Virus record (IMG/VR): IMGVR_UViG_3300031787_007614
Location: 1-64,000 of that record
Reading direction: 5' to 3' (one strand)
Length of the DNA: 64,000 bases
Shown here: in pieces, positions 2,667 through 36,951 of the stretch
How the letters are laid out: every line of letters starts with the position of its first letter
Position numbering within the stretch: the stretch's first letter is position 1
The notes under the pieces: generated by a model
What the model saw: only the letters and a program-made list of their open reading frames with translations
Database searches by the model: none
What the model was told of the DNA's origin: nothing
Made by a program: the position numbers and the translations under genes

Positions 2667-2826
2667 GGTGGTTTCTGTTACGAGGTATTTCCTACCCTAG
2701 ACGACCTTAAGCGGCCATCAAGAATTTTTCATCATTTGCAGATAAAAGTTTTGCTTGATTTACGGTCATCGCCTACCGTGCTGTCCACTCTGTTACTCTT
2801 TGCCCTGTCGAATCTAGGTCAGGCCC
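2666..2826 (-). ncRNA. ssrA: tmRNA, two-piece: piece with 5' acceptor strand and tag ORF ANDEKFLMAA* (2707-2739)
   Basis: Starts GGGCCTGA-CCTAGATTCGAC; tag reading frame ends in AA-stop. Confidence 0.92.
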
Positions 2827-2839
2827 ATCATAAAGAAAC

Positions 2840-2917
2840 TTAATCTACGCTTAATGTTGTTAACAACAAGCATAATATTGGAAAAACAATTAATAAAAAT
2901 TTTGCTAAATTTTCCAT
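2840..2917 (-). CDS. 25-aa hydrophobic micropeptide in tmRNA intervening segment
   Basis: MENLAKFLLIVFPILCLLLTTLSVD*; start is 1 nt after the upstream micro-ORF stop. Confidence 0.45.
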   Translation of the reverse strand: MENLAKFLLIVFPILCLLLTTLSVD

Positions 2918-2918
2918 A

Positions 2919-3029
2919 TTACCATAACTCACAGTTTTTTATTTTCTCTTCGTCCAATGTGGTATCACGTGTAAAATAAAATACACCAAACACTAACCAA
3001 AATAACAAAAATAAAACATAACCTATCAT
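2919..3029 (-). CDS. 36-aa single-TM micropeptide in tmRNA intervening segment
   Basis: MIGYVLFLLFWLVFGVFYFTRDTTLDEEKIKNCELW*; RBS AAGGAAG just upstream. Confidence 0.55.
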   Translation of the reverse strand: MIGYVLFLLFWLVFGVFYFTRDTTLDEEKIKNCELW

Positions 3030-3041
3030 TAAACTTCCTTA

Positions 3042-3108
3042 TGGTGGACCTGGGGGGATTCGCACCCCCGTCCAGAACACTTTTCTCTCGGCTTCATACA
3101 GCAATAAC
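3042..3108 (-). ncRNA. ssrA: tmRNA, two-piece: piece with T-arm and ACCA end (transcribed first)
   Basis: GGAC-GGGGG-TGCGAAT-CCCCC-CAGGTCC-ACCA; pairs with GGGCCTG giving the G3-U70 Ala identity. Confidence 0.92.
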
Positions 3109-3831: not shown

Positions 3832-3917
3832 TGGTACCAGAGACGGGACTCGAACCCGTATGCCCTTGCAAGCGGCAGATTTTAAGTCTGCTGTGTATAC
3901 CATTCCACCACTCTGGC
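3832..3917 (-). tRNA. tRNA-Leu(TAA)
   Basis: Long variable arm, anticodon loop CT-TAA-AA, ACCA. Confidence 0.95.
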
Positions 3918-3935: not shown

Positions 3936-4010
3936 TGGTCCGGCGTAGAGGAATCGAACCTCTATAATGACTTTAGAAGAATCATGTCCTATCCGTTGAA
4001 CGAACGCCAG
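3936..4010 (-). tRNA. tRNA-Arg(TCT)
   Basis: Cloverleaf, anticodon loop CT-TCT-AA, CCA. Confidence 0.93.
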
Positions 4011-4015
4011 ATGTT

Positions 4016-4090
4016 TGGTGGGCCAACTTGGAATTGAACCAAGACTCGACCGATTATGAGTCGGTTGCTTTACCATTAAGCTATTGGCCC
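4016..4090 (-). tRNA. tRNA-CAT (probably Ile2, otherwise elongator Met)
   Basis: Cloverleaf, loop CT-CAT-AA; G1-C72 paired so not initiator. Confidence 0.9.
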
Positions 4091-5773: not shown

Positions 5774-6564
5774 TTTTGCATCATCAGCGCATTGAAGTTT
5801 GCAGGAACAACAATTGTTTGCACACGACCGTTCTTGATACCTTCTGAGATATTCATCATAGCCTGCGCTTGCATGTAAGCAATTGACTGAGCACCTTGAT
5901 TACTCAATGCTTGCATACGTTCTGCTTCCATCTTAGCAGTCTTAACTTCAACTTCTTTTTGTTTCAATTCATTCTTGGCACGAACCAACTCATTTGCACT
6001 CGCAACCACAGAATCTGCAGGTACAATATTCCGAATCAACACTTGACCAACAACCAAACTACCATCAAGTTTTTCATCAGCCAAACTCTTTTGAATTTGT
6101 TCTTTAATTGCTTGTTCCATCACTTGGCGATTATCAGCCATGTCTAGTGCCTCGTACTTTCGGGCTTCTTTGTAGATGGCATTACGAGTGGTTTGAACCA
6201 TATAGTTGTACATCAAGTAGATGTCGCCGTTGTGCCGAGCATGGAATGCTTGACTCTTTTGGCTATACAACTCGGCTACCTGTGCTTGATTGATGTTATA
6301 GATAACCACTGCATCAAAGTCTTTCATTGTTGAGTTATCTTTAGCAACAGGTGTCATGTCCTCCAGTTTGACATTAACGTCCTTGATTGGGAATGTAAGA
6401 ACATCACCCCAAAAGGTTTGATTAAACGAGCCAGGCATTAATTCACCTTGCTGGACTTGTTTATCAAAGCCAACACGTACACCAACTTCACCTGTTTCGA
6501 TACGAGTACAACCTGTTGCCAGCACAGCCGCGGCAAGAACGGAGAGAGTCAAAATACGTTTCAT
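5770..6564 (-). CDS. SPFH/band-7 (prohibitin-like) lipoprotein
   Basis: Lipobox LATGC, IETGEVGV, C-terminal coiled coil. Confidence 0.88.
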   Translation of the reverse strand: MKRILTLSVLAAAVLATGCTRIETGEVGVRVGFDKQVQQGELMPGSFNQTFWGDVLTFPIKDVNVKLEDMTPVAKDNSTMKDFDAVVIYNINQAQVAELYSQKSQAFHARHNGDIYLMYNYMVQTTRNAIYKEARKYEALDMADNRQVMEQAIKEQIQKSLADEKLDGSLVVGQVLIRNIVPADSVVASANELVRAKNELKQKEVEVKTAKMEAERMQALSNQGAQSIAYMQAQAMMNISEGIKNGRVQTIVVPANFNALMMQK

Positions 6565-19678: not shown

Positions 19679-20524
19679 TTATTTGCCCCATCCATTACCC
19701 CAGAGGTCCACATGCAATCGTGGGCTGTACCAATAACCTCGTTTGAGTGCTTCGTCGGCAACGTGAATTCTATTGCCATCATACACACTCACAACACCGC
19801 CAACAGGCATCACAAAAACTGGTCCGCTAAATCCACGGGTTCGATAGTCGTCAACTACTAGATCAAGCTCTTTGAAATCATCAATGTGACCAACAACAAA
19901 CTTCAAATAGGTAACACCGTGAGTTTCGTAATCCCAAATAATGTCAGGTTTGATAGCATCTTCATACTTTTCACCACTGACACTAAGTTTAGGACTTACT
20001 GAGAATGTGATCTCGCCAAACCATTCAGACAGATACTGTTTGAATTCTCTTGTGAGTTCTTGAGTACCATTGGTTTCAAATGTAATGTGTCGCAGTCCAC
20101 GTTCGTGCAACAGATTCAACAGTTCAGGATATGCACGTTGCCAACCTAGCAATGGCTCGCCACCTGTGATCACAAGATGCACTGAATTGCCGTTTGGTTG
20201 TTGCCAGTGGCCATTGGGCAACAGCGCAGCCATTTTGTCAACTAACTCTTGTGCTGTGTATGTGGGACTTAGATGTTTAAAGTCAGGATGCCAACTTGCA
20301 TACGAATCGCATCCTGTATTAACCAACGGGAGCTCTTCAAAAGTCTTGTAGAGATGAACGCTCTTTGCGACGTCATCTGCCTCAGTGCTCTTATCACCGG
20401 GTTGGCATCCAAATCCCGAACACGTAAAGTTGCAACCGAAGGTTCGTAAGAAGATAGAAGGAACTCCAATATAGCGTCCTTCGCCCTGAGCAGAATAAAA
20501 TAGTTCACTTACTTTTAATTTCAT
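19679..20524 (-). CDS. queE: 7-carboxy-7-deazaguanine synthase
   Basis: E.FYS.QGEG, FLR..GCN..C, CDS, ITGGEP, ETNG, SPK, RLH. Confidence 0.95.
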   Translation of the reverse strand: MKLKVSELFYSAQGEGRYIGVPSIFLRTFGCNFTCSGFGCQPGDKSTEADDVAKSVHLYKTFEELPLVNTGCDSYASWHPDFKHLSPTYTAQELVDKMAALLPNGHWQQPNGNSVHLVITGGEPLLGWQRAYPELLNLLHERGLRHITFETNGTQELTREFKQYLSEWFGEITFSVSPKLSVSGEKYEDAIKPDIIWDYETHGVTYLKFVVGHIDDFKELDLVVDDYRTRGFSGPVFVMPVGGVVSVYDGNRIHVADEALKRGYWYSPRLHVDLWGNGWGK

Positions 20525-21240: not shown

Positions 21241-23223
21241 TTAGGCTGCTAGTTTTGCCCTGGCGCCAGCATCTCCGCGTTTGGCAACGTCTACCTGCGT
21301 GTCAGCGTTCAAGCATTCAACTGTGGCTTTTCCAAAATTTCTACGTCTAGCAAAATAAAATAGTTCTAAGAAACGTGGAAAGCTCATAGTTTTATCTTCT
21401 GGAAACTCCAGTTGATATTCTCTTGGCGCATGTACAAGTTTGTGATCAAAGCTGAGATATTCCCAGATGTTGTAGTCTAATTCTAAAACCTCAGGATAAG
21501 TGTTCATAGCATCGTAAGCCACATGGTATCTGCGTTGGAATCGCATGATGTTCTCCAACAACACAGGCGGTAAATCATAACGACTCATGAACTTTTCTAA
21601 CATGTCAAAGATATTGTGATTTTGTTTTTCCACATGCATGTTCAACACAGTTCTGTGTATGAGGTTCCATCCGTGAATTTCAATGCCAATCTTGGGATGA
21701 TTGATTCGGCCATTGGTCATCCAACTGCGATAGTACTCGCGAACTTCTTCTTGTTCGCGGTGGATCCATTCATGACCTTGCACGTATTCAAACAGGTCTG
21801 CATAAAACTCGCTGTAGGGCACACCCTGATACTTGAACACCAATCGACTCAACAGTGTGCTGATGCCATTGATGTGGAAGGTATTGATAAACCATGAAAA
21901 AATATGTGCTTCCATCATGACATCAAACGGCATGTCTTTGGTGCCAGTGATAATGTCAATGGCTTCTTCAATGTGTTCGTTGGAGTATGATCCAGAAAAA
22001 TAGTCTGTTACACTTTGATTGGTAATCTTAAACAACTTCTTCTGCAACAGGTTCATTTCGGCATTTTCCAACAACTGAGCCTGGAACACCGTGAGACCAG
22101 TATGATTGCCCATTTCAAACAAAGTCCAAAAGTTTTTCTTCCAAGACTCAAGACTTTCACCAGGTAGGCCCAAGATAAGTTCAGTGTAGGTTGGAATGTT
22201 ACGTTGCTCACACAGCTCAAATACTTCGTTGAGCTTGTTCATTTCCATGTTTTTGCGACGAATGTTTTCCAATACATCCAAGTCAAGACTTTGCACACTC
22301 AGCGTTAGACCTTGATTGAAGCCTCGGGCATCCAGCAATTTTTTAACAATGTCCACAACTTCTTTCTTTTGATTCTTGGCCCAGGCCACAGAGAAAGTTC
22401 TCGGAGAACCATACTTTTCTTGACATTCAATAATCTTGTCTGCAATCAAACTGTCACGTTCGGCAAACATGCCAAAGTTAGCGTCAGTAATTGATATGAA
22501 ATCAAAGTTGTGCTTAGCCATCCATTCCAACTCATGGTACACACGTTCTAAACCAAACTTCTTGACCTTGTTGTATGTCAAGCTACCCCAGTCACAAAAC
22601 GTACAAGCAAATGGGCAACCACGAGAAGTTTCTAGTGTGCCTTGCCACATGATGTCAGGATTTGCAGCCATTAGGTCATCAAATACACCTGCCAGATACG
22701 GGCTAGGAATATCTTCAAGAGTTTCAATGCGCTTGGCATCACCTGTGCTTATAGCTTCGCCGTCTCGATTGATCAGCAAGCCAGGTATTGACTCCCAGTC
22801 TTTGCTGTCATATGCCAGCATGAGATTTCTAAATGTGATTTCACCTTCGTAGCAAATCACAATGTCCATGAATGGTTCTTTGCGAAACAGATCTTTGTCT
22901 GTGATTGCAGGTTCGGGACCGCCAAATATGGTCAACACGCCAGGATTGATCTCCTTGAGCCTGCGAGCCAATGCATAGTTGAAATTGTGATTCCACACAT
23001 AAGTGCTAAAAGTCACAACATCATTTTCAGCCAGTCGTTGTGCAATTGGCTCTATGTTGTCCCGGCGCCACACCCATTCAGTCACTTGCCATGCATCACG
23101 TATGCTGGGTTCCGCAACTGCATAACTCCAAATCACACCTGCTGAGTATGGCAGGTAGTAGGCATTGAGTTCTTTAGGACCTTGTTGGAAGTTTGGTTGT
23201 ACCCAGGCAATTTTTCTTTTCAT
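21241..23223 (-). CDS. B12-binding radical SAM enzyme
   Basis: STYVWN/GGP cobalamin domain, ETSRGCPFACTFC, DANFG, ILGLPGE. Confidence 0.92.
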   Translation of the reverse strand: MKRKIAWVQPNFQQGPKELNAYYLPYSAGVIWSYAVAEPSIRDAWQVTEWVWRRDNIEPIAQRLAENDVVTFSTYVWNHNFNYALARRLKEINPGVLTIFGGPEPAITDKDLFRKEPFMDIVICYEGEITFRNLMLAYDSKDWESIPGLLINRDGEAISTGDAKRIETLEDIPSPYLAGVFDDLMAANPDIMWQGTLETSRGCPFACTFCDWGSLTYNKVKKFGLERVYHELEWMAKHNFDFISITDANFGMFAERDSLIADKIIECQEKYGSPRTFSVAWAKNQKKEVVDIVKKLLDARGFNQGLTLSVQSLDLDVLENIRRKNMEMNKLNEVFELCEQRNIPTYTELILGLPGESLESWKKNFWTLFEMGNHTGLTVFQAQLLENAEMNLLQKKLFKITNQSVTDYFSGSYSNEHIEEAIDIITGTKDMPFDVMMEAHIFSWFINTFHINGISTLLSRLVFKYQGVPYSEFYADLFEYVQGHEWIHREQEEVREYYRSWMTNGRINHPKIGIEIHGWNLIHRTVLNMHVEKQNHNIFDMLEKFMSRYDLPPVLLENIMRFQRRYHVAYDAMNTYPEVLELDYNIWEYLSFDHKLVHAPREYQLEFPEDKTMSFPRFLELFYFARRRNFGKATVECLNADTQVDVAKRGDAGARAKLAA

Positions 23224-24089
23224 GCATTATTTACTTGTTTTTGATCAGTATCTTTTTTTGCAAAATGTGTATGCGGGTTGGCAAATTGAACCATTTGACT
23301 GTTTACATCATTCTGTGCTAGTTTTTCCCAGGGATCTTGACTGCCGTTGAACACGTTGGTAAAGAATGAAAGATCCATACCTAATTCACTGCGCATGTAT
23401 GTGGCCAATTTTGCACAGTCTCGGTGTCGCAGGTCCATTTGCTGAACGCTGTGAAAGTCCAACGGATCATCGGGGCGACCTTCTAGCATGGCACGATTTT
23501 TAAATGTTTCATCGCCGTTGTTGCCAGTCAAGTCGTGGCGATCATGTTCTACCCATACTGGAATTCTTTCCCAAATGTCCAGCATGTATGCCTGTTGACT
23601 CAACCACCCATCTTGTGTGGGATGGGGACTGATGTATCCCAACAGTTCATACCATTTGCGTGGAACTATTGGAAAAATTGAGTAGGGGTGGTCGTTGTGA
23701 GTATGGAATGCCAGCAATCTAAACTTGCCATTGTATTTCAAAATCTCACTGTCCCACCCCTGGGTTTGCATGATGGCATCATCATTCCAAATAACAAACC
23801 AAGGAGCCAGGGCTTTCTCAGCCATCTTGTTGTTGTAGATATGCAATCTGATATATCCCAATGGGTCAAACAACATGGCGGTATAGTGATAACCGTGTGA
23901 GTCTAACCAAGGCTGCAATTCAGTTTGGAAGTACGTTTTGCCTTTGTCATCGTCTTTGTCAAATCCAAACATGATTTGCAAACGATGAGGATTGTCAGCC
24001 AGTTCAAACAAACTGCGAACACTTTTGCCCAACGCTTCTGTACGACCTCGAGTGGCCAACAGTAAAGATATATCAAATTCTTGTGCCAT
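23220..24089 (-). CDS. Glycosyltransferase (GT-A/GT2-like)
   Basis: SLLLATRGR, WNDD. Confidence 0.75.
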   Translation of the reverse strand: MAQEFDISLLLATRGRTEALGKSVRSLFELADNPHRLQIMFGFDKDDDKGKTYFQTELQPWLDSHGYHYTAMLFDPLGYIRLHIYNNKMAEKALAPWFVIWNDDAIMQTQGWDSEILKYNGKFRLLAFHTHNDHPYSIFPIVPRKWYELLGYISPHPTQDGWLSQQAYMLDIWERIPVWVEHDRHDLTGNNGDETFKNRAMLEGRPDDPLDFHSVQQMDLRHRDCAKLATYMRSELGMDLSFFTNVFNGSQDPWEKLAQNDVNSQMVQFANPHTHFAKKDTDQKQVNNA

Positions 24090-24112: not shown

Positions 24113-24733
24113 TTATGCTTGATTGTCTGCAGCCAGCTTTTTCTGCAAGTGATTCAACAAGAAACCATACGCAGGCAGAATAACCAACAGACTCACAATG
24201 ATCTTACTGATTGAATTGTTGGTTGCAACAATGTGCCAGTTAGCAGCCATGAACTCATTTGCGCCACCAGCAAAGGCAGTAAAGAAGAACACATAGGTAT
24301 CAAAGAATGTGCTCACAATTGAACTCAATGCAGGAGCAATCCACCAAGTGGCGTACTTTTCACGAATGTATTGGAACACGTACACATCAAGCAAGTTGCT
24401 CACAAAGTATGCAACACCCGAGCCAAGACCAATGCGGAAAGCAACTGAGTCAGGAGCACCGCCCAGTTTGACCACTGCCATTGACACAATGATAGCAGGG
24501 ATGAATGCCAATGCAATCACCGCACGACCAGTTTGTTTGCCTAACATTCGCACAGTCAAGTCGGTCAACACAACCACTAGTGGGAATGTGAATGCGGCTG
24601 CTGCCAATGGTGCACCAAACACTGAGAATTTGAATTGCACAATGTAGTTGCTGATAGCAATGATAATGATATGTGCCAGCATGAGCTTGTAGGCCAATGC
24701 ACGGTCAACGCCACTTAAGATTCGATCTAACAT
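24113..24733 (-). CDS. yhhQ: preQ0/preQ1 transporter (VUT family)
   Basis: SN..VQ, FTFP....TDLTVR, RI..GS..AY, DT..FF. Confidence 0.9.
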   Translation of the reverse strand: MLDRILSGVDRALAYKLMLAHIIIIAISNYIVQFKFSVFGAPLAAAAFTFPLVVVLTDLTVRMLGKQTGRAVIALAFIPAIIVSMAVVKLGGAPDSVAFRIGLGSGVAYFVSNLLDVYVFQYIREKYATWWIAPALSSIVSTFFDTYVFFFTAFAGGANEFMAANWHIVATNNSISKIIVSLLVILPAYGFLLNHLQKKLAADNQA

Positions 24734-24750: not shown

Positions 24751-25257
24751 TTAAACGAATAGATCTTCCATCCACTCGCGATGGCCTTCTCTAAAAGCCA
24801 TATTGCTCTGTGTTTCGCGCACTTCCACACGATAGCACCAGAGACGCTCTGCTTCACCCGGTCCCCACAGGTCCGGAATGTAAACACCGTTCACATACTT
24901 GTACAGCATGTCTGCCAAGCCTTCACACCCTAAGCGTGGCAGGATTGTGAGTTTGGCCATTTTTTTCTCTTGCAAGAGCTTGTATGTCGCCAGCTCTGGA
25001 TCATCTGCAGACACCAGCAAGGTATGATCAAATTGATCTTCTAATGTCTTTTTAAGTTCTTTGAGACCGCCATAGTCAGCGGCCCAGTTACGCACATCCA
25101 GGTTGTCTGTGCCAAAGTAGAACTTCATTGAGAATGAGTAACCGTGAATTAGATTGCAGTGGCTGTCGGCACGCCATTGACGGTATGCGCAGGGAAAAGC
25201 ATCATGATACTCTTTGGTGCTGGTGTACTTGTATTGTACTGGTTGATTTGTTGCCAT
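24751..25257 (-). CDS. queD: 6-carboxytetrahydropterin synthase
   Basis: C..IHGY, DYG.LK, FDH, E.LA, V.ET. Confidence 0.88.
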   Translation of the reverse strand: MATNQPVQYKYTSTKEYHDAFPCAYRQWRADSHCNLIHGYSFSMKFYFGTDNLDVRNWAADYGGLKELKKTLEDQFDHTLLVSADDPELATYKLLQEKKMAKLTILPRLGCEGLADMLYKYVNGVYIPDLWGPGEAERLWCYRVEVRETQSNMAFREGHREWMEDLFV

Positions 25258-25283
25258 ATTGTCCTCCTATGTATTATAGCATA

Positions 25284-25326
25284 GGCAGCAGAGTTTGTAT
25301 AGCGGGATGATGCCGGACAGGCCGCT
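25284..25326 (-). promoter_or_regulatory. Candidate preQ1-I-like pseudoknot riboswitch in queD leader
   Basis: AGCGG-CCTGTCCGGCATCATC-CCGCT-ATACAAACT-CTGCTGCC; begins 9 nt after TATAAGTA (25335-25342). Confidence 0.55.
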
Positions 25327-25359
25327 TAGAGAAATACTTATATTAAATATCAACAGAGG

Positions 25360-27491: not shown

Positions 27492-27898
27492 ACGCAAACT
27501 TCCTCTTTGAGATATCGTTTGAGTTCTTTGTCATTGGGTTCTACAGTATAGTTCTTCTTGAAAAAAATTTCATAACTATCACTGCCGTATTTGCCAATGC
27601 CGTACAAATCGGTAGCATCATCACCATTCCAAGTCATGTAGTCTTGACTCATTTTTTTCAATCTGGTGTATCTTACATTAGCCATACCTAATGGTGCAAT
27701 AATGCTTTTTACAAAATCTTCATCGGCTGCGATCAATGCTTCCGGCGTTGGGAACCAGTATAAAAATTCTGGCAAGGTTGTTTTTACAGATTTGCGGCCT
27801 GTTTGATTCAACATGATCACTCCAACCATGTGTTCCCATGAGTTAGAGATTTGTTGTTGAACCATCAGATCATCTCGTAATGCATGAAAAAATATCAT
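27488..27898 (-). CDS. HhH DNA glycosylase (MBD4/endonuclease III-like)
   Basis: W...V..I.LNQT, PLG....R, LYGIGKYG.DSY.IF. Confidence 0.85.
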   Translation of the reverse strand: MIFFHALRDDLMVQQQISNSWEHMVGVIMLNQTGRKSVKTTLPEFLYWFPTPEALIAADEDFVKSIIAPLGMANVRYTRLKKMSQDYMTWNGDDATDLYGIGKYGSDSYEIFFKKNYTVEPNDKELKRYLKEEVCV

Positions 27899-28587
27899 CG
27901 TGGTGCAAAGTCCTGTTGTAGTTTGATGTTGTCAAAGAATTCTTTTTTTACACTTTGGTCTGATTTAAACGCACCGTGTAAAACTGTTGTTTGGGTGAGA
28001 CTAGAGTGAGCCATGATACCGCGATTCTCACAACAACCATGGGTAGCTTGTATATAAACTGCAACATCCTTGGACCCGGTCGCGAATTCAATTTCGCGAG
28101 CAATATCCATACATAGCTCTTCTTGGAGAGTGCCTCGACGGGCACACCATTGCGCAATCCTGGTATACTTGGATAGACCAATAAGTTTGGGGCCAGCAAT
28201 GATTCCAATATAAGCCACACCCGTAACAGGCTGGTGATGATGCGAACACATGCTCTTAAGCTCTGAACGCACCACAAGCATACCTTCGTATGCTCCGTCC
28301 GTATCGTTTGGGAAAGCCGTAGCATTAGGGCTCGTCTCATAGCGACCAGCCATAATTTCATTGAAGTACATTTTTGCAAGGCGTTGCGCCGTGCCTTGTG
28401 AGTTAGGATCATTTTCCCTGTCAATTAGTAGTGTATCGAGAACTTGTTCAAATGCTTGAGTGGCCTCCATAATCAAATGTTCACGATCTGACTCAGCAAC
28501 ATAATCACTGATGTTGTCACCAGCCCAGAATCTCTTGCCGTCTGCCTTCATGCGTTCGCGAAGGACTTGTGATAGATTTTTTTCCAA
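27895..28587 (-). CDS. folE: GTP cyclohydrolase I
   Basis: SMCSHH, GLSK..R, LQE, H.C...RG; TTG start. Confidence 0.95.
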   Translation of the reverse strand: MEKNLSQVLRERMKADGKRFWAGDNISDYVAESDREHLIMEATQAFEQVLDTLLIDRENDPNSQGTAQRLAKMYFNEIMAGRYETSPNATAFPNDTDGAYEGMLVVRSELKSMCSHHHQPVTGVAYIGIIAGPKLIGLSKYTRIAQWCARRGTLQEELCMDIAREIEFATGSKDVAVYIQATHGCCENRGIMAHSSLTQTTVLHGAFKSDQSVKKEFFDNIKLQQDFAPR

Positions 28588-28654: not shown

Positions 28655-29326
28655 TCAATAGATTAATTGATTTGTGACCCATCTAATTAACCTATCTGCT
28701 ATAACTTGATGGCCCAGTTGATTGGGATGGCCACCACTACTGCTAAACAATTCATGTCCTCGTTCCATACTGGTAAATTTCACTCCCAGTATGTCAGCAC
28801 AAGTTACCTTGCCATTCTCATACATGTATCTAGTGTCTACTTCAGACCAAAATTTTATCTTTTGCCAGCCAGCAACAAATAGTGCATTTACCCTGGCTTC
28901 TCTGCAAATTCCTTGCACAGTCAAGATAGCAGTGTTCACAGCATAATCGTGTGCGGCATCGCTAGAAAAATACTTGTAATACAATTCGTTTAGATTGTGT
29001 TCTGTGGGATTGGCATTGGGCACAGCCACTCCGTTGGGTTGCAAATGTACCAGCCGATCATGCCAGGTCATGTGACGTTGTTGAGAAGTCAAAAACACCA
29101 ATACAGTGTACCTATTGTCTGGATTTTCTCTTTCAGTGCGGTACTTGTCTAAAAAGCCTTTGAGTTGCAACACTGTGTGAGGAATGCTGGATCCAGGTAC
29201 TGCAACATTATCCACACTGGTCACATTCAAACGGTCACCAATGATCTGGCCAAATGATTTTTCGCCTGGCTCAAGTTCTGCACCATATGCCCAACTGTCT
29301 CCTAAAATAGCAAGTCTATGAATCAT
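28655..29326 (-). CDS. SGNH/GDSL-like protein, paralog 3
   Basis: LGDSWAYG, N.A.PG, HPN..GH. Confidence 0.75.
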   Translation of the reverse strand: MIHRLAILGDSWAYGAELEPGEKSFGQIIGDRLNVTSVDNVAVPGSSIPHTVLQLKGFLDKYRTERENPDNRYTVLVFLTSQQRHMTWHDRLVHLQPNGVAVPNANPTEHNLNELYYKYFSSDAAHDYAVNTAILTVQGICREARVNALFVAGWQKIKFWSEVDTRYMYENGKVTCADILGVKFTSMERGHELFSSSGGHPNQLGHQVIADRLIRWVTNQLIY

Positions 29327-30317
29327 TCTTATCAAACTCTGTTTCCACGCGGCTGTACCAAGCATCTACGTCTCGTGCATATTCTCTCAACAGATTATAG
29401 TTGTTTTCAATGCGTGTGGACAACTGTTGTTTTAACTCACAACATTGTCCCACAGTCAATTGATCTAGCCTGTGTATTTCTTTCAGCACAGCATGTAATC
29501 TCTGATCTTCATCTGTGATGTTGTCATAACTGTGTGTGACAATGTCATCAAACACATCAAACCCCAGTTTACGCACTTCAGCAACCAGACCAGGAACTGC
29601 AAACCAAATTGGAATTTGTCTCAAGCCAAATGCCTTGAATGTTTTTTCACTGATAAAATGACTGCGCCACACGCCAACATCAGACTGACTGCCAGACTCT
29701 GCAACAATATTGAACATGCAGGTTTTGAACATGCTGTTGGTTTGGTCATGTTCTAGCCCAGTTGATCGTTCCACAATCCCATCCAACAACAGCGGCAATT
29801 CTCTTGGTATAATTTCTCGGTATTCGTTGGTAATGTTATTGGCACCCATGCTACCAAAGCTGAGTCTGACACTAGAGATGTCCGTCAACCCAGCAGCAAG
29901 TCTAGCACGACTTATACTGGGCCTACGAATCAAACACAAAAACTTTGTGTCAATGCCAGTAGCGGCACCAGACGCATCAAGACGATCAAACCAACCGGCA
30001 AAATTTGTTAGAAAAGTAGGTTGCGACAGTGCTTTGTACGAAAGGCCATCAACGTCAACCACAGCGTTGAATACCACCAGGATATCTTCAACTGGTAGTG
30101 TTTGCAAATACGTAATTAGATTGCCGATCACTTTGTCACACTGGCCTTCGGCTCTAAAATCTACTATGAGTTTTTTGCCGTGCAAGTCGGCTCGTGACAT
30201 TCCGCTGGTTGCTAAATCTTGTTCTACTCTAGGACCAGGGTTATCAAGATACCATTGTGCCATGTGCAATGCACCATAATGCACAAGATTGCGTCTTGAA
30301 AAACTAAACCACTTCAT
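29316..30317 (-). CDS. Putative glycosyltransferase, GT10-like paralog 3
   Basis: FNIVAES....ISEKTFK...P......LGFDVFDD...SYD. Confidence 0.6.
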   Translation of the reverse strand: MKWFSFSRRNLVHYGALHMAQWYLDNPGPRVEQDLATSGMSRADLHGKKLIVDFRAEGQCDKVIGNLITYLQTLPVEDILVVFNAVVDVDGLSYKALSQPTFLTNFAGWFDRLDASGAATGIDTKFLCLIRRPSISRARLAAGLTDISSVRLSFGSMGANNITNEYREIIPRELPLLLDGIVERSTGLEHDQTNSMFKTCMFNIVAESGSQSDVGVWRSHFISEKTFKAFGLRQIPIWFAVPGLVAEVRKLGFDVFDDIVTHSYDNITDEDQRLHAVLKEIHRLDQLTVGQCCELKQQLSTRIENNYNLLREYARDVDAWYSRVETEFDKNDS

Positions 30318-30910
30318 TCAACAATCTTGATATTTCTTAGATCAGGATATGGCACATACACAGGTTTAGGATTGTGTTCCTTGACACCTTGTAGCAATGC
30401 CACACCTTGAATGGCATCTTCAATACTGGGCTTGTAGTGATAGCCCACATGAAATGTCTTTTGGTCCTGCCAAGGTGCCACAGTCAAGTCTCTGCCATCA
30501 TAGCGTTGGCGCAATATGGTTTCATATGCTTTTTTATCATCCAACAATATAGCACCACCATGCCCAATAGCCAATGGCTTTGTATGTCCAAAACTCAAAC
30601 ACTGCATGGTGCCTGGCCGATACATATCCTGTTCCAATCTGCGAGCTGAGTCCCAAATTCTAGTGTAAGTGAATTCATACTCGCCTTCCCAATGCTGCCA
30701 GTCAATATCGTGATAGACATAGTGAATGCCTAACTTGTGCATGGTCATAGGAATGCTCAAATAAGTGTAAGGTGTAAACTTACAAGCTCGTACTCGATCA
30801 TATCGCAAGCAAAGTTCAATGGCATGTGTACAGCAATCAGTCATGATTGCATACGGTGCTCCTGTGAACTCTGCTAGTTCTTCTTCAAACTTTTTTATCT
30901 TGTCGAACAT
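30314..30910 (-). CDS. DegT/DnrJ-type PLP aminotransferase (short)
   Basis: FE..LA, T.A..L, DSA, SF...K.L..G.GG. Confidence 0.82.
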   Translation of the reverse strand: MFDKIKKFEEELAEFTGAPYAIMTDCCTHAIELCLRYDRVRACKFTPYTYLSIPMTMHKLGIHYVYHDIDWQHWEGEYEFTYTRIWDSARRLEQDMYRPGTMQCLSFGHTKPLAIGHGGAILLDDKKAYETILRQRYDGRDLTVAPWQDQKTFHVGYHYKPSIEDAIQGVALLQGVKEHNPKPVYVPYPDLRNIKIVE

Positions 30911-31847
30911 ACCAGTTCCATGCGTGTTGAATCATGTCATCTAGCTCATAATGACGCCATGCTCCTGCTATCAAATTAAACTTTTCTGAACTGGCAGTAA
31001 GTACAGGAGGGTCACCGGCTCTACGCTTGCCAACAACAACATTCAATGGTTGTTGTGTTTCATCAAGTGCGGCTTCAATAATGCCGTGATTGCTTGTGCC
31101 CATGCTGGAGCCAAGATTGTAAACGCCCGCAGGGATTTTGTGATATAACGCCAGAACGTGGGCCCGGGCAATATCATCCACATGCACGTAATCACGCACA
31201 CATGTACCATCCTCAGTGGGGAAATCGTTTCCGTTTAACACAAAATCTTTTTGATCCCTTATGCTTTCAAGCACTCTAGCAATAATATGTGTGGCACCAG
31301 GCTCTTGACCATGCCTGCCTTTGGGGTCTGCACCACATGCATTGAAATAGCGAAAACTAACATAGTCAAGACCGTATGCCCGGTGATAGCTTTCCAGCAT
31401 CATGTCAATCATCAGTTTAGATTCGCCATAAGGACTAACAGGTTCGTTGGGATCCACTTCATGTATGGGATTCATGACGGGCTCACCGTATGTGGCTGCT
31501 GAACTTGAAAACACCAATCTACAACGAGGCATGCTTTGTTTAACAATATCCAACAACTTCAATGTTTTGGCCACATTGTTGTTGTAGTATTCTGAAGGGT
31601 TCTGTACTGAAGGCCCCACAAGGCTGGTGCCAGCACAATGAATGATAGCATTGGGTTGCTTTTGTATGATCCAACTCAGTGCTACATCACTTGCAAAGTC
31701 CTGATACAAGAATCCATCGGGCACACCTCTAAGATGTTCAGGAGGCTGTCTGCGATCAATGCCGTATACTTCATGCCCGGCATCTTTCAATGCCAGCATG
31801 GTCTGACCACCAATGTACCCGGCTGATCCAGTTACAATTACAATCAT
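30885..31847 (-). CDS. galE: UDP-glucose 4-epimerase
   Basis: G.AGYIG, SSAA.YG, PYG.SK, RYFN, DGT.VRDY.HV.D. Confidence 0.93.
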   Translation of the reverse strand: MIVIVTGSAGYIGGQTMLALKDAGHEVYGIDRRQPPEHLRGVPDGFLYQDFASDVALSWIIQKQPNAIIHCAGTSLVGPSVQNPSEYYNNNVAKTLKLLDIVKQSMPRCRLVFSSSAATYGEPVMNPIHEVDPNEPVSPYGESKLMIDMMLESYHRAYGLDYVSFRYFNACGADPKGRHGQEPGATHIIARVLESIRDQKDFVLNGNDFPTEDGTCVRDYVHVDDIARAHVLALYHKIPAGVYNLGSSMGTSNHGIIEAALDETQQPLNVVVGKRRAGDPPVLTASSEKFNLIAGAWRHYELDDMIQHAWNWYVRQDKKV

Positions 31848-33058
31848 TTTTCAATCTTTACAACTTGATATTTTTCGTGAGAAGCGTGGTCACGATAGCG
31901 GTTGCCCGCTCTATTCCATTGCTCACCGCTACCACTAATAATATCAATAACGCGATCCACAGTGGCATTGTTCCAATCTGAAATAAGTCCCATGTTGTGG
32001 TGCGGCTCGCGAAGTAGGTTTTGCATTTTGTGATAAGCATCATCTATGCTCCAGGGAATATACAGTCTATTGGGATCGTTCGCGAAGGTTTCAGGAAAAC
32101 TGCGATACGCTGGATATAGCACATTGCATCCAACAGTATCGGCCTCTGATACGGTGTTTGAAACCCAATCTTGTAAAGCACAATTAAACAACACACGAGT
32201 ATTGTTGAGATGACTATAGTATTCATTCTTGCTTATATTGTCGTAGATCTTGAGCTTGCCTTCTGCCTCCATACGGAGGGCACGTTCAATATAGTCTGGA
32301 TTGTTGGATCGGAGAGGTCCGCCACTGTATATTGCAAACTCACACGGTTCGGAGGTAAGCTCACCATACATCTCAATAAGGTCCATGAAGAATCCAGGTT
32401 GTTTTTCCTGATCGAAACGGGCTGCAAAACCCACTCGTCTCGGTCTTTCAGCAAACGGCGTGATATTCTCTGTACCGCCAATTCTTTCCAGAACCTCTGA
32501 TTTTCCAAATGCCAGACCGGAAATGTTGTAGATTGGAGCAGTCCATCCAGCGATGCGCATGTGCGCGACCATTTCTTCATTGGTAGCCAATACTGCACCC
32601 CCCGAGAAAGCCACCATCTCATTGACCATTTGTTCATACAAGTTCATCCACTTTGCCATACCCCACACATGCACAAAGTCATCAGGATCAATGGCCTGTG
32701 CCAAACAACGAACATAAATCTTTGGACATTGTTCTTGTGGAATCTGATTCATGATGTAACCAAGGCTTTCAAAGCCCGGCTGGAACATGTCTTCAAAGTA
32801 GATCACATCGTCACCGGTAACATCGCCGTTCTTCATGAGCTGAACCAAGTTCATCATTTGGCTCATGGCAAAGAAACTGCGTCCGTGTGCGTCTAACACT
32901 TGACCTACTGAGATAGCTTGTGTGTTGTCAATTGTAGTGCCAGGCACATACACAACATCAAGACCTCTGCGGTCAAACACACGTCGATTCCACTCTGTGA
33001 GTTGTAGTGTGTAGCGGGCTTCATAACTTTCCAAGCCCATGTAAAATAGTTTTCTCAT
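31844..33058 (-). CDS. GT-B fold glycosyltransferase
   Basis: R.DQEK, N..SEA...G, YP..RSFPE. Confidence 0.7.
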   Translation of the reverse strand: MRKLFYMGLESYEARYTLQLTEWNRRVFDRRGLDVVYVPGTTIDNTQAISVGQVLDAHGRSFFAMSQMMNLVQLMKNGDVTGDDVIYFEDMFQPGFESLGYIMNQIPQEQCPKIYVRCLAQAIDPDDFVHVWGMAKWMNLYEQMVNEMVAFSGGAVLATNEEMVAHMRIAGWTAPIYNISGLAFGKSEVLERIGGTENITPFAERPRRVGFAARFDQEKQPGFFMDLIEMYGELTSEPCEFAIYSGGPLRSNNPDYIERALRMEAEGKLKIYDNISKNEYYSHLNNTRVLFNCALQDWVSNTVSEADTVGCNVLYPAYRSFPETFANDPNRLYIPWSIDDAYHKMQNLLREPHHNMGLISDWNNATVDRVIDIISGSGEQWNRAGNRYRDHASHEKYQVVKIEK

Positions 33059-33762
33059 TGATGTTCCTGTAAAAATTTTATCACTGTGGGTTTTAAATGT
33101 TCTGCAAACAGTACATTGCCTTTGAAGTTTGGATGAACATTGTTGAACAAATCTTGTGTTTCAAGTTGTTTCCAAAAAAAGAATGTGTCCCACACACTGT
33201 CTACCAAACTTGGTTCTGGATCGATGTTAGGGGTTTCGTGCATGAACCTGTGTATAACTTCAGCACCCCAACAATGATGCATATCAAATTCTGTGCCATC
33301 GTTTAGTATAACACAAACCGACCCATTATTAATAGTCATTCCGGCTTTGTCTGCTAGAAATTTTTGCCAGGAAAGATGTCCTATAGTAATGTTTGGATAA
33401 TTGCAATTAACAATGTCACTGTGTGCTCCAATTAACAACACAGGTTTATTTAAACTGTTGATTTTGTTCAGACAAAATTGATTGCATTCTTCCCAAATAT
33501 CTTTCCAGTCTGAACGCTGAATAAATTCTTTGAAAGTTAACTTAGTTGCATCTTGTAAACACAAAATAGGTTCATTATAGATCCAAATTACAGGTACATT
33601 AGGCGATCGTACCAATCTAATATAACTTCCCAACACACTAGTTCCAGATTGAGCATGGTCATAGAACTCAAACCCCCATTCCTTGGCAAGATTAGTTGTT
33701 GGTACATCCAGCGGCCAACTAGATGCCGCCCAACTTGGTCCAGTGTATGTAAATTTTTTCAT
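33055..33762 (-). CDS. SGNH/GDSL-like protein, paralog 4
   Basis: GPSW, A.SG.S, HPN..G; AT-rich. Confidence 0.55.
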   Translation of the reverse strand: MKKFTYTGPSWAASSWPLDVPTTNLAKEWGFEFYDHAQSGTSVLGSYIRLVRSPNVPVIWIYNEPILCLQDATKLTFKEFIQRSDWKDIWEECNQFCLNKINSLNKPVLLIGAHSDIVNCNYPNITIGHLSWQKFLADKAGMTINNGSVCVILNDGTEFDMHHCWGAEVIHRFMHETPNIDPEPSLVDSVWDTFFFWKQLETQDLFNNVHPNFKGNVLFAEHLKPTVIKFLQEHQ

Positions 33763-33769
33763 CAGCCAC

Positions 33770-33997
33770 TTAGTTACGAAATGCTCCGGCAAAGCGACGA
33801 GTGTCTTCGTCCCACATGTTCTTGGCATTCTTGCCTTGTGAAAACTTGTTGAACTGCTGCCAGGCATAACTCTTAAAGTTATACAAATCGGCTTCGTTGT
33901 AACGATAACCGTAGTCTTGGCAGAACTCCTGGAAGTGCTCAAGATGCTCAAAGAGCTCGGCCACACGTGGGTTAGATTTAATAGCGATTTTTGCCAT
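33770..33997 (-). CDS. Hypothetical protein
   Basis: RBS AGGA; FC..YGY.Y.E..LY. Confidence 0.7.
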   Translation of the reverse strand: MAKIAIKSNPRVAELFEHLEHFQEFCQDYGYRYNEADLYNFKSYAWQQFNKFSQGKNAKNMWDEDTRRFAGAFRN

Positions 33998-34008
33998 TTT
34001 GTTTCCTA

Positions 34009-34452
34009 TTAGATAGCAATGTTAATACTAGGGCGGTGAGTTTCATACTTAATAAGAGCTCCGTTTTCACCATCTTCGGAGACCTCAATCCAGACTGAGC
34101 GTTCTGGATACCGTGCGGCAATTTGCAAATACAAATCGTCTGACATCATTTCACATGACTTGTAGTCGAGTTGGACGGTTCCTGACTCGTAGAGTTTTTG
34201 TAGCCATCGTTTGAACTGGATGAATTCAATGTCTCGATCATTGTGTACAACATCAATCCACACCCGGAAGTGGAAGATATGACGGTGAGGAGTACCAAGG
34301 AAACTAACATCATACTCATCGCCCGTCTTAAGGGCTGGATCTGTTGCGGCTGCGGGGTAGAAGTGGATGCCTTCTTTTTGGAAGGTAACCCAGATTCTTC
34401 TTTGTGCGGCATATTTGATTCTTTCAATTTGTTCACGTTCATCTTGTATCAT
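34009..34452 (-). CDS. Second QueD-like T-fold protein (DpdL-type, putative CDG decarboxylase)
   Basis: H..P, LGTPHRHIF (LxxxHRHxF), RDIEF, SCE, V.EDGE. Confidence 0.72.
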   Translation of the reverse strand: MIQDEREQIERIKYAAQRRIWVTFQKEGIHFYPAAATDPALKTGDEYDVSFLGTPHRHIFHFRVWIDVVHNDRDIEFIQFKRWLQKLYESGTVQLDYKSCEMMSDDLYLQIAARYPERSVWIEVSEDGENGALIKYETHRPSINIAI

Positions 34453-34982
34453 TTGATTACTTCATCCTTTGTGTATTGGTCCCAAGAGGTAAATGTTTTT
34501 CTATCCAGCAAGTCATGCAGGCTGTGACACCATACTCCTGGGTTGGTTGCTTTGAAATCTTTGTCGTCTAGCTTGATAGTGGCATTGTAGCCTAGCAGTT
34601 TAATATAAGGCAGTTTCACTGAAATCATAGGAACAAATTGTGCTTGTTCGCACAAGCTACCTTCGCACAATCCTTCCACAGCACTTGAATCAAGATCCAA
34701 GGTACACCAGTATCCTCGATCCAGCCACGGTTGAATCATCTGTTCCCAGGCAGTCCAGACTCCAGCATCGTTCATAGTGGGGTTTGGAAAACTTTGATTG
34801 GCGCCAAAGTAGATGTGTGTGATTGGATTTTTACTCTTGTGGTCTGACTCACCCAGTTGCCACATGATTTGATCTGCATCTTGCAGTCCGACCACAAACA
34901 ATGTACGGTGACCGGCTACAGGACTGGCCTCAACTTCTGTACCTACAAAGAAATTGGTATCTTCGTGTCCGGGTCTATTCAT
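34449..34982 (-). CDS. Hypothetical protein coupled to the DpdL-like gene
   Basis: G.EVE....G..TLFV, HIYFGAN, K.DD..F..TNPGVW. Confidence 0.75.
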   Translation of the reverse strand: MNRPGHEDTNFFVGTEVEASPVAGHRTLFVVGLQDADQIMWQLGESDHKSKNPITHIYFGANQSFPNPTMNDAGVWTAWEQMIQPWLDRGYWCTLDLDSSAVEGLCEGSLCEQAQFVPMISVKLPYIKLLGYNATIKLDDKDFKATNPGVWCHSLHDLLDRKTFTSWDQYTKDEVIK

Positions 34983-35956
34983 AATGTAATCTCAAATAAG
35001 TTAGATAAATGTTTGTTGTTTGCTTTTTTGTCTGTCTTAGTTTTTTTCATGCCAGGGTGTACCTTTTTATTTTTAAATTCAGTAGCATCAAAAATTGATC
35101 TTGGCACAAAGAAACGATCCATAACTCCAGATACTTTGGTATAACTTTTACCAAGGTCATTGCCGTTAAAATCACACATCACATAATCACCTAACCCCAT
35201 CATAAGATTGATAATATCATTGCAAGTGTACCCAAATCGTTTACAATGTGTATCTCGCAGTTCGACCTGAACCACGGGTTGATACTTAGCAATGGTTTGT
35301 GTTGCACCTTCTAATGCAAACAGTTCAGAACCTTCAATATCAATCTTAATAAGATCAACATTTTCAAACCCAAAACTGTCAAGTGTGCGTTGCTCTGCAG
35401 TCTGTGTGGGATTGTTGGTAGTTTTGCCATCAAGTAACACAGCATCACCGCGACTGCACTCGTTGGTTTTTTGTTCCATGGTAATAATTCCAGCGACTTT
35501 ACCTAATGCATATTCAAAAAACTCAATCTCTCCTATCAAGTCAAGACTGGCAAATGTGCCATTGGGGAACTTGAACCAGCCATCTGGACGATCCGGCTGA
35601 TGTCTTACTTGTTGCAGTTTGCTATCCCAATAACGACCTTGAAGTTTTGCATTTTTTGCAATGTCTACATTGAGTTTCATTAGTTCCATGCTAGACTGCA
35701 TGGGCTCAAAGGTTTTTACATGTTGGCACCAGGTGGCATATTCAATTGCGTTCATGCCAATGTTGCCACCAATGTCAATTACAGTTCTTGCATTAGGTAG
35801 CAAGCGACGATTCATTACCAAATTGCGAGCCTGGTATGGACCGTTTTCTCTTGCCATACGCTGTTCATAAAGTTTGTCATTGTCCCAGATCCAATATTGC
35901 CTGCCTATGCGGTTTGTTACTAGTTTTTTGTTGTTGATATCAAATAGTTGTGCCAT
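34979..35956 (-). CDS. FkbM-family methyltransferase
   Basis: IDIGGNIG, FEP, TLD....DLIKIDIEG.E. Confidence 0.9.
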   Translation of the reverse strand: MAQLFDINNKKLVTNRIGRQYWIWDNDKLYEQRMARENGPYQARNLVMNRRLLPNARTVIDIGGNIGMNAIEYATWCQHVKTFEPMQSSMELMKLNVDIAKNAKLQGRYWDSKLQQVRHQPDRPDGWFKFPNGTFASLDLIGEIEFFEYALGKVAGIITMEQKTNECSRGDAVLLDGKTTNNPTQTAEQRTLDSFGFENVDLIKIDIEGSELFALEGATQTIAKYQPVVQVELRDTHCKRFGYTCNDIINLMMGLGDYVMCDFNGNDLGKSYTKVSGVMDRFFVPRSIFDATEFKNKKVHPGMKKTKTDKKANNKHLSNLFEITL

Positions 35957-36027
35957 GTTGTTGCCTTATAAAGAAATCCTGCATACATATTTAACAGTAT
36001 ACAGGATCACGAGAGAGAAAGCAAGAG

Positions 36028-36951
36028 TTACTTCTTCTTTTTCCAACGATCTTTGAAGGCATCAGGGCACCATCTGGTTGCAATTTCCATTGGATCATTT
36101 TGAGCCAATACATCTAATGCTTCAGGAGTCAAATCGATTAACTTGCGTTCTGTCGAACCAGGAGTTATATTGTAGAGACTCTGCTTTGTTTCTTCCCTAA
36201 CATCTTCAAAATTTGAATCAGGAAGATCTTCAAACAAGCAAATAAATTCCTTGTAGTAAGAATTACGATTCCATCTATTATAGGTTACTTCTTGTATTGT
36301 TGCATTGGTTACGTCAATGAATCTTCCGTCAACATACTGTAACACTCCGTCGTTATATTTTTCAAACGGACGTAAATTTTCGTTAGTAGTGGGACCACCG
36401 TGTGTTCTTTCTGACGTATGAACGGTCGTTGCTAAAGCATGATTCATTGCATATCTAGCCATGTCTTTAGGGCTGACTCTCCTGCTGTTTTCGATCACTT
36501 CTCGAATTAAATCTTTTTCAATTTGTTTAATAGGATATGTGTGCTCGCAATGCCATTCATTGGCAAAGTTATCACCTGATAAACCGGCCAACCCTAGCTC
36601 ATGCATTCTTCCAATGGCCTTGCCAGTGATTAGATCTGTACCGCTATTGCCGGTAGCATGTTGTAATCCCATAACATCTGAATGAAATTTTCTGATACCG
36701 CCATTACTCCAATGCACAGTGTCACCAGAAATGCTCGCCTGGTTATATTCAGGTCCTGCGGCAAAACCACCATTGAAAAATCTTTTGTAATAGCAATATT
36801 CTTTGAGTTCTTCGATTGTGCGGGCTTTAACATGATTAGCAAATTTTCGCAAGTCGCCGGCCATAAATGCTAATCTTACACCGGCCGTTATAGCCTTTAG
36901 AACGGCTTTGTTGGGATCTTGTGCAAGTAGTTTCTGAATATTCAAAACCAA
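36028..36951 (-). CDS. Hypothetical protein with EHxxP motif
   Basis: 307 aa; own promoter TTGACT-17-TATAGT at 36976-37004. Confidence 0.7.
   Translation of the reverse strand: MVLNIQKLLAQDPNKAVLKAITAGVRLAFMAGDLRKFANHVKARTIEELKEYCYYKRFFNGGFAAGPEYNQASISGDTVHWSNGGIRKFHSDVMGLQHATGNSGTDLITGKAIGRMHELGLAGLSGDNFANEWHCEHTYPIKQIEKDLIREVIENSRRVSPKDMARYAMNHALATTVHTSERTHGGPTTNENLRPFEKYNDGVLQYVDGRFIDVTNATIQEVTYNRWNRNSYYKEFICLFEDLPDSNFEDVREETKQSLYNITPGSTERKLIDLTPEALDVLAQNDPMEIATRWCPDAFKDRWKKKK

Follow-up and report, generated by a model that had tools for sequence, protein, structure and literature searches.

The leader of the queD gene of a giant phage contains a small, strongly conserved RNA pseudoknot that resembles a preQ1-I riboswitch but is predicted to work in the opposite direction, with ligand binding switching translation on. 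It occurs in hundreds of uncultured phages and gave no match to an Rfam family. The sequence analyzed here (the window) is a 64,000-nt stretch, positions 1 to 64,000 of IMG/VR record IMGVR_UViG_3300031787_007614, and the element lies on its minus strand at 25342-25258, within a 102-nt spacer between queD and an unknown 218-aa ORF that ends at 25360. The observation behind the original prediction holds, since every element it described is present. Its interpretation as a variant preQ1-I-like ON switch is partly supported, because the fold, the gene context and the competing platform are borne out while ligand binding and ligand identity remain inferences. The features, all on the minus strand, are as follows.

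25335..25342 (-), TATAAGTA box 8 nt upstream of P1
25322..25326 (-), P1 5' strand AGCGG, pairing with 25301-25305
25315..25321 (-), L1, CCU (family consensus N-C-U) followed by a variable spacer, GUCC here
25308..25314 (-), P2 5' strand GGCA-U-CA, the U being the conserved mismatch partner; pairs with 25284-25290
25306..25307 (-), L2, U-C; C25306 lies immediately 5' of the P1 3' strand, the position of the preQ1-I specificity cytidine
25301..25305 (-), P1 3' strand CCGCU
25291..25300 (-), L3, AUACAAACUC, 10 nt, the A-rich tail ATACAAACT(C) in DNA letters
25284..25290 (-), P2 3' strand UG-C-UGCC, the C being the conserved mismatch partner; shared with the sequestering helix
25266..25285 (-), putative sequestering hairpin CCUAUG-CUAUAAUA-CAUAGG (25285-25280 with 25271-25266); its 5' CC belongs to P2 and its 3' AGG to the Shine-Dalgarno (SD) sequence
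25273..25301 (-), embedded sigma70-like promoter, -35-like TATACA (25301-25296), 17 nt, extended -10 TGCTATAAT (25281-25273, TGcTATAAT); the -35 lies in L3 and the -10 in the hairpin loop
25263..25268 (-), SD sequence AGGAGG
25255..25257 (-), queD start codon
24751..25257 (-), QueD-like T-fold enzyme (PTPS family, SHCxxxHGY motif)
24113..24733 (-), yhhQ (Vut_1, queuosine precursor transporter), starting 17 nt after queD and probably co-transcribed

The loop closed by P1 is CCUGUCCGGCAUCAUC, ending in CATC (25309-25306).

Comparative evidence for the pseudoknot

Folding of the single leader sequence is not better than shuffled controls (z = 0.16), but this says little because the method cannot model pseudoknots. 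The comparative evidence is decisive, and more than 190 related phage leaders keep the same H-type pseudoknot, with P1 of 5 bp and P2 of 7 bp around a conserved U.C mismatch. The QueD of the window has at least 587 relatives in IMG/VR, and we read the leaders of the best 80. Of these, 78 match the motif pattern and the other two carry P1 variants, UGCGG/CCGCA, which is compensated, and UGCGG/CCGCU, which has a terminal mismatch. A gene-blind pattern scan for the 3' half of the motif returned at least 120 stretches. Among the 119 loci fetched, four were chance hits without P1, and the others lie upstream of QueD-like genes of four divergent N-terminal types, apart from a few leaders followed first by another ORF or by an N-terminally extended QueD.

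We aligned 140 distinct aptamers (alignment A1) and counted pairs under a pseudoknot model. In A1, 95.4% of cells pair, 8 of 12 pairs show changes on both sides, and 0 of 500 column shuffles reach the observed values on any measure. Sliding the 3' partners by 1-3 columns drops pairing to 30-46%. P2 is the informative helix because nothing selected for it. Five of its 7 pairs covary in A1, and its pair types include GGCA/UGCC, GGCG/CGCC, GGUG/CACC, GGCU/AGCC, GGGC/GCCC, GACAU/AUGUC, GGCAU/AUGCC and GACGC/GUGUC; in one subclass it extends to seven or more pairs (ACGACuu/..GUCGU). The extra CA/UG pairs of P2 proposed originally are supported as well: C-G is invariant, and A-U becomes G-C in every sequence where either side changes (2 in A1 and 3 in the independent set described below), with no unpaired case. 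Covarying forms of P1 in relatives are ACCGG/CCGGU, AGUGG/CCACU, AGAGG/CCUCU, UGCGG/CCGCA and AUCGG/CCGAU. Other partners were considered for the invariant UCUGC. Pairing with the P1 5' strand is rejected because P1 varies while CUGC does not, and a shifted GCA/UGC register of P2 is rejected because it fails in GACAU-type sequences; the UG pairs instead with the invariant CA of the loop.

P1 in A1 is biased, because our filter required it to be fully paired, and some invariant columns are inflated, because 119 loci were fetched with a pattern that fixes them. The first 80 loci do not have this bias. We therefore also built a second set (A3) from a different QueD subtype ('STKHYGHNIGLS'), using QueD homology only and no RNA information. 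A covariance model built from A1 found the element in 66 of 80 loci, and inspection showed a shorter variant in most of the remainder; about 77 of 80 leaders of this subtype carry it. In A3, 96% of cells pair and 9 of 12 pairs have double changes. P1 pairs in 99.6% of cells with three covarying pairs (AU/UA, GC/CG/UA and CG/AU/UA types), and P2 pairs in 93% with six of seven covarying. The short variant (mini-variant) has a 3-4 bp P1 (AAGG/CCUU) and an L3 cut from 10 to 7 nt (CUAAUUC), as an H-type pseudoknot predicts, since L3 spans P1. G.U pairs occur in the sense-strand reading only. The structure is therefore RNA, on this strand, and real.

The single-stranded positions are also conserved. 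In A1, the first L1 nucleotide is U64/C54/A22, the second is C in 137/140 and the third is U in 137/140. N-C-U is followed by 0-6 variable nt, and L1 plus spacer is 4-9 nt long. The distal part of the P2 5' strand is variable, while its junction part is an invariant U-C-A, in which the U faces an almost invariant C across the helix and C-A pairs with U-G of the P2 3' strand (U-G-C plus a variable part). The top G-C pair of P1 (columns 8/31) is present in 140/140, and the C of L2 (column 30), which abuts P1, in 140/140; the nucleotide preceding it is U115/C18/A7. The consensus of L3 is W-U-A-H-A-A-A-Y-U-C. Some of this invariance reflects the search pattern, but the QueD-selected sets show the same columns conserved.

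Predicted expression platform and embedded promoter

No terminator-like site was found. What follows P2 differs between subclasses, but in five architectures the P2 3' strand, with the next few nucleotides, is the 5' arm of a predicted helix whose 3' arm is the SD sequence and/or the start codon. In class a, to which the window belongs, CCUAUG/CAUAGG covers the SD, with the compensated forms CCUAUA/UAUAGG and CUCUAUU/AAUAGAG in relatives. In class b, UGUC(A/G)UC/GAUGGCA covers the AUG, with an inner stem on the SD. In class c, G(U/C)CAUUG/CAAUGGC covers the AUG. In a fourth type, UGUCUU/GGAGACA covers the SD. In the mini-variant, GCCAUA/UAUGGC or CCCAU/AUGGG, following the second codon, covers the AUG. 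In MFE folds of the platform alone, 144 of 146 leaders of classes a, b and c have P2 3' nucleotides paired to the SD/AUG region, and individual z-scores range from -0.3 to -3.7. The P2 5' strand (GGCAU) and the start region (AUGGCA) are near-copies of each other, the usual signature of a strand that chooses between two partners. The sequestering helix rests on recurring complementarity and a few architecture-level compensations, not on dense covariation: RNAalifold on the class b and c platforms kept only 4 pairs, with one-sided changes only. The class-a hairpin is the centroid structure but is weak (about -7 to -9 kcal/mol, z about -1).

From this pairing potential, the pseudoknot and the sequestering helix are inferred to exclude each other. 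If ligand stabilizes the pseudoknot, as in every known H-type riboswitch, translation is switched on. We consider this direction more likely than not, given that the element is a riboswitch. It is also possible, though unlikely, that ligand binding represses, for example if the bound pseudoknot blocks a standby site or ribosome access, or stacks on and stabilizes the downstream hairpin. Feedback repression would be the expected logic for a biosynthetic gene, and in class a only 2 nt are shared between P2 and the hairpin. In classes b and c and the mini-variant, however, 4-8 nt of the P2 3' strand are part of the helix covering the AUG, so the two structures cannot coexist. Activating the first committed enzyme of a pathway with a pathway metabolite is unusual logic, and the characterized preQ1 riboswitches, as far as is known, repress.

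In class b, 13 of 39 leaders have a sigma70-like promoter (at least 9/12 match, several 12/12) ending 6-11 nt before P1, so the aptamer would start the mRNA. In class a a promoter-like site lies inside the switch, with the -35 in the L3 sequence (T/A)T(T/A)ACA and the -10 in the hairpin loop (TGnTAnnnT). In the window it matches at 10/12 with TG present. The C of the -35 co-occurs with a correctly spaced TAnnnT -10: 94 leaders have both and 6 have the C alone, while 47 of 53 leaders with T or A at that position have no -10. The promoter therefore looks functional, although shared ancestry could inflate the association. A transcript from it would begin at about the SD, would lack both the aptamer and the 5' arm of the hairpin, and would escape control. 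This supports the bypass proposed originally; that it acts early in infection remains conjecture. Conservation of DNA signals only, that is, this promoter with flanking inverted repeats acting as an operator, is very unlikely to account for the element. Classes b and c and the mini-variant keep the full aptamer with no embedded -10, the compensatory changes follow a pseudoknot topology, G.U pairs are tolerated only in the sense-strand reading, and many leaders have their promoter upstream of P1 instead. Further upstream, [AT]TAA[AG]TA lies 5-11 nt before P1 in 75/106 class-a leaders. A T4-type late promoter was considered at this position and dropped, as TATAAATA and ATAARTA are not enriched in the window.

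Comparison with preQ1-I and candidate ligands

The element shares several features with the preQ1-I riboswitch (RF00522), especially type I (Carnobacterium, Haemophilus, Neisseria) and type III (E. coli yhhQ). These are the H-type topology with a 5-bp P1 and a P2 formed between the P1 loop and the 3' tail, the invariant G-C pair at the top of P1 (the pocket floor), the cytidine at the specificity position immediately 5' of it, mostly preceded by U as in type I, an A-rich L3 that runs along P1, and the association with queuosine-precursor genes including yhhQ (PMC8752633, PMC10622847). It differs from preQ1-I in L1, which is N-C-U and not U-U-C. The first L1 uridine (U6 in Tte, U7 in Eco, and U7 as well in type I) contacts the ligand and the floor adenine, and its change to C costs 35,000-fold (Eco) or about 134,000-fold (Tte) in affinity and abolishes regulation (PMC10622847), whereas here this position is not conserved. 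P2 is 7 bp with a conserved U.C mismatch, against 3-4 bp, which agrees with the original claims of a replaced UUC and a longer P2. L3 is longer, with three extra conserved nucleotides, and ends in Y-U-C. In type I the 3' end of L3 supplies the ligand-reading adenine A30, followed by C31-U32; here L3 has invariant A at three positions and U-C at the end, and the position matching C31 is C67/U73, in a register relative to the crystal structures that cannot be fixed from sequence. In preQ1-I the first SD nucleotides lie inside P2 or L3, or a terminator is coupled, so that ligand binding represses, while here the SD lies 16 nt (window) to about 40 nt downstream of P2 and the predicted polarity is opposite.

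Scans against Rfam 15, which included the preQ1-II and preQ1-III families RF01054 and RF02680, found no hit in or near the leader at the gathering score, and none at E<=10 for 301 nt of the window, for the relative L055, or for the bare aptamers of the window and of one other locus (L037). This is weak evidence, because the same scan found nothing in the E. coli K-12 yhhQ leader, which contains the validated type III preQ1-I aptamer UUGGGUUCCCUCACCCCAA... A model built from the present family does not recognize the E. coli aptamer either. An ordinary preQ1-I member, a fourth 'type' that binds preQ1 or preQ0 in the canonical pocket and represses queD-yhhQ, is favored by the shared topology, the floor pair, the specificity cytidine, an L3 ending in A-(C/U)-U and the gene context; E. 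coli yhhQ is itself controlled by a preQ1-I type III aptamer (PMC10622847). The variable first L1 position, the C that follows it, the long P2, the SD outside P2 and the competition between P2 and the SD/AUG-sequestering helix make this reading improbable. As the element fails two defining features, the L1 uridine and SD-in-P2 repression, we do not file it as a member, and 'variant of preQ1-I' is a resemblance and not a demonstrated membership.

We favor, with a probability of about 0.6, a phage-specific translational ON riboswitch built like preQ1-I but with its own pocket nucleotides. In this view, without ligand the P2 3' strand (UGCUGCC) pairs downstream and hides the SD or, in other subclasses, the start codon. 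A planar guanine-like metabolite of the 7-deazaguanine/pterin pathway would stabilize P1 plus P2, pull the shared nucleotides out of the sequestering helix, free the ribosome binding site and switch on QueD, the enzyme that diverts dihydroneopterin triphosphate into 7-deazaguanine synthesis. The analysis establishes the pseudoknot, its conservation, its link to QueD-like genes and the nucleotides shared by P2 and the sequestering helix, whereas ligand binding with any ligand-dependent change in conformation or gene control, ligand identity, the direction of the switch and promoter use are inferred. We are nearly certain that the element is a structured cis-regulator and consider a metabolite riboswitch likely. 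The alternative is a leader that toggles between the two structures under a phage or host RNA-binding protein (including autoregulation by QueD), temperature, or the kinetics of transcription and translation coupling. Nothing in the sequence proves a small-molecule pocket, the invariant single-stranded nucleotides could equally be a protein recognition site, and riboswitches are rarely found in phages (PMC5473149). We consider this unlikely, since the pseudoknot is small and compact (about 46 nt, 25329-25284), its invariant junction nucleotides sit at the positions that form the ligand pocket in preQ1-I, and, with the few exceptions given above, it is tied to one metabolic enzyme family across four divergent subtypes and different neighboring genes, a pattern typical of metabolite riboswitches.

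The invariant C next to the G-C floor suggests a ligand with a guanine-type Watson-Crick face, which includes 7-deazaguanines (preQ1, preQ0, CDG, 7-deazaguanine), guanine itself and pterins. The variable L1 position fits the original idea of an altered pocket or ligand (guanine, CDG or 7-deazaguanine) but does not prove it. With the few exceptions given above, only QueD-like genes are the first cistron. QueD is the branch point that takes dihydroneopterin triphosphate away from folate synthesis, and substrate or feed-forward activation by a pterin, or positive feedback by a 7-deazapurine, would both fit an ON switch. A 7-deazapurine is the leading candidate, although short of even odds; a pterin is less likely, and another purine less likely still. 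The conserved U.C mismatch inside P2 is a second possible contact site. It is about as likely as not that this is a new riboswitch class, confined to large uncultured (mostly jumbo, T4-polymerase-type) phages, that reuses the preQ1-I fold with a rebuilt pocket to sense a 7-deazapurine or pterin intermediate (CDG, preQ0, 7-deazaguanine, dihydroneopterin triphosphate or a related pterin) and activates translation of QueD, combined in one subclass with an internal bypass promoter. If so, it would be the first abundant phage-only riboswitch and the first ON switch with this fold.

Other systems are comparable in part. The preQ1-II and preQ1-III riboswitches share the gene context and pseudoknot-based translational control, but they are larger HLout-type folds with an embedded hairpin, and the SD is sequestered in the bound state (OFF). 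Translational ON purine riboswitches, such as the Vibrio vulnificus add adenine riboswitch, follow the logic proposed here, in which the apo state hides the SD or AUG in a helix that shares nucleotides with an aptamer helix and the ligand frees it, but their aptamer is a three-way junction, unrelated in sequence and fold. The riboswitches previously seen in phages, the glutamine riboswitch in cyanophages and c-di-GMP-I in C. difficile prophages (PMC5473149), are metabolite-sensing leaders too, but they are a handful of copies of bacterial classes, while this element is abundant and essentially restricted to phages.

Distribution and gene context

Full-text literature searches found no description of the element. 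A 2017 survey considered riboswitches almost absent from phages and speculated that phages might use undiscovered classes (PMC5473149); this element, with hundreds of non-identical copies, would be such a class. It is tied to the pathway that replaces guanine in phage DNA with 7-deazaguanines to evade restriction. If it senses a pathway intermediate, it shows how phages time or meter a costly DNA-modification pathway that competes with host folate synthesis for dihydroneopterin triphosphate. It would also be a natural example of one small fold evolving opposite regulatory polarity and probably new specificity, and it could serve as a very small ON-switch part for synthetic biology.

There is one copy in the window. 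Among 185,579 species genomes only three short MAG contigs (5.5-8 kb) carry it, plus one chance hit. A blastn search of two leader types against 50,697 cultured-phage records gave only chance hits. The closest cultured QueD homologs, in Acidovorax phage ACP17 and Dinoroseobacter phage R5C, have overlapping upstream genes and no leader, and the family model finds nothing there. The window is part of a jumbo phage. Identical loci sit on IMG/VR contigs of 215-364 kb, and the DNA polymerase is 47-51% identical to those of Sinorhizobium phage Phosso and Agrobacterium phage Atu_ph07.

The leader sits inside a 7-deazaguanine-type cluster. The order is folE (27895-28587), HhH-GPD, HIT and an unknown ORF, then the element, then queD, yhhQ, a GT2-like gene, a B12-radical-SAM methyltransferase, an unknown ORF and queE (19679-20524). 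A tblastn search for QueC in the window found none, while the FolE control was found. The 289-aa ORF after yhhQ was considered as a DpdA transglycosylase and rejected; it has no PDB sequence match and looks like a GT2-type glycosyltransferase.

The aptamer, its mini-variant and the upstream box

The experimentally validated type III preQ1-I aptamer of Escherichia coli K-12 is visible in the sequence of the yhhQ leader (positions 6176–6214 of the fetched locus L286). Nevertheless, the Rfam 15 scan of this leader reports nothing at E ≤ 10, showing that the library or the scan is blind to at least this subtype. A mini-variant of the aptamer, located about 35–90 nt upstream of queD in loci L242, L256, L266–L277 (among them L267/L270, L268 and L274), L281, L282 and L284, has a P1 of only 3–4 bp (AAGG/CCUU) and an L3 of 7 nt (CUAAUUC). 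It is usually preceded by a near-consensus TTGACA-17-TATAAT promoter, and the family model scores it at only 20–24 bits or misses it.

A box of sequence TATAAGTA lies upstream of P1 at 25335–25342 on the minus strand of the window. In the form [AT]TAA[AG]TA, it lies 5–11 nt upstream of P1 in 75 of 106 leaders of class a, the subclass of the window. In many relatives the box contains the stop codon of the upstream gene, but this is not the case in the window, and the box is not enriched elsewhere in the window.

The only hits in the genome collection are short contigs (L200, L202 and L203) binned into Bacteroidota MAGs, assigned to Crocinitomicaceae, Chitinophagales and an 'uncultured Bacteroidetes'. 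These may be mis-binned phage DNA or a hint about hosts, although the sigma70-type promoters in the leaders argue against a Bacteroidota host. In two other loci (L185, 4955–5803 and L194, 7776–8624) a 282-aa ORF sits between the aptamer/platform and queD. By eye, its N-terminus looks like that of a GIY-YIG homing endonuclease, and it may be a mobile insertion into the regulated leader.

QueD-like proteins and the 7-deazaguanine genes

The genes of the window that concern this pathway and its surroundings are as follows.
24751–25257 (-), QueD-like protein
23220–24089 (-), phage-specific GT2-like protein (phrog_14945)
21241–23223 (-), 660-aa B12-binding radical SAM methyltransferase (KedN5-like)
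28655–36951 (-), block of sugar-nucleotide genes

The phage QueD-like proteins, that of the window and those of the cultured phages ACP17 and R5C included (L204, 2701–3177; L205, 2734–3177), carry SHCxxxHGY instead of the canonical QueD signature CxxxHGH (PMC10516641). They score far below the QueD cut-off of NCBIfam (36.7 against 89 bits). The GT2-like protein is the commonest gene directly after queD in other loci (34 of 137), and in the window it is followed by the radical SAM methyltransferase, suggesting that there is a further, uncharacterised modification step linked to the 7-deazaguanine genes. A tblastn search of the whole window (1–64000) with the QueC of R5C detected no QueC homologue, while the FolE control was found at 27934–28317. 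The cluster as seen would stop at CDG, unless queC lies elsewhere in the roughly 290–360 kb genome.

Other genes of the window

The block of sugar-nucleotide genes lies just upstream of folE and includes a GDSL-like gene, a DegT aminotransferase fragment, an NAD epimerase/dehydratase and an FkbM methyltransferase. The phage also encodes a permuted (two-piece type) tmRNA (2707–3103 (-)), with a long insertion of about 190 nt, and four tRNA genes (1080–1151, 3835–3917, 3939–4010, 4019–4090 (-)).
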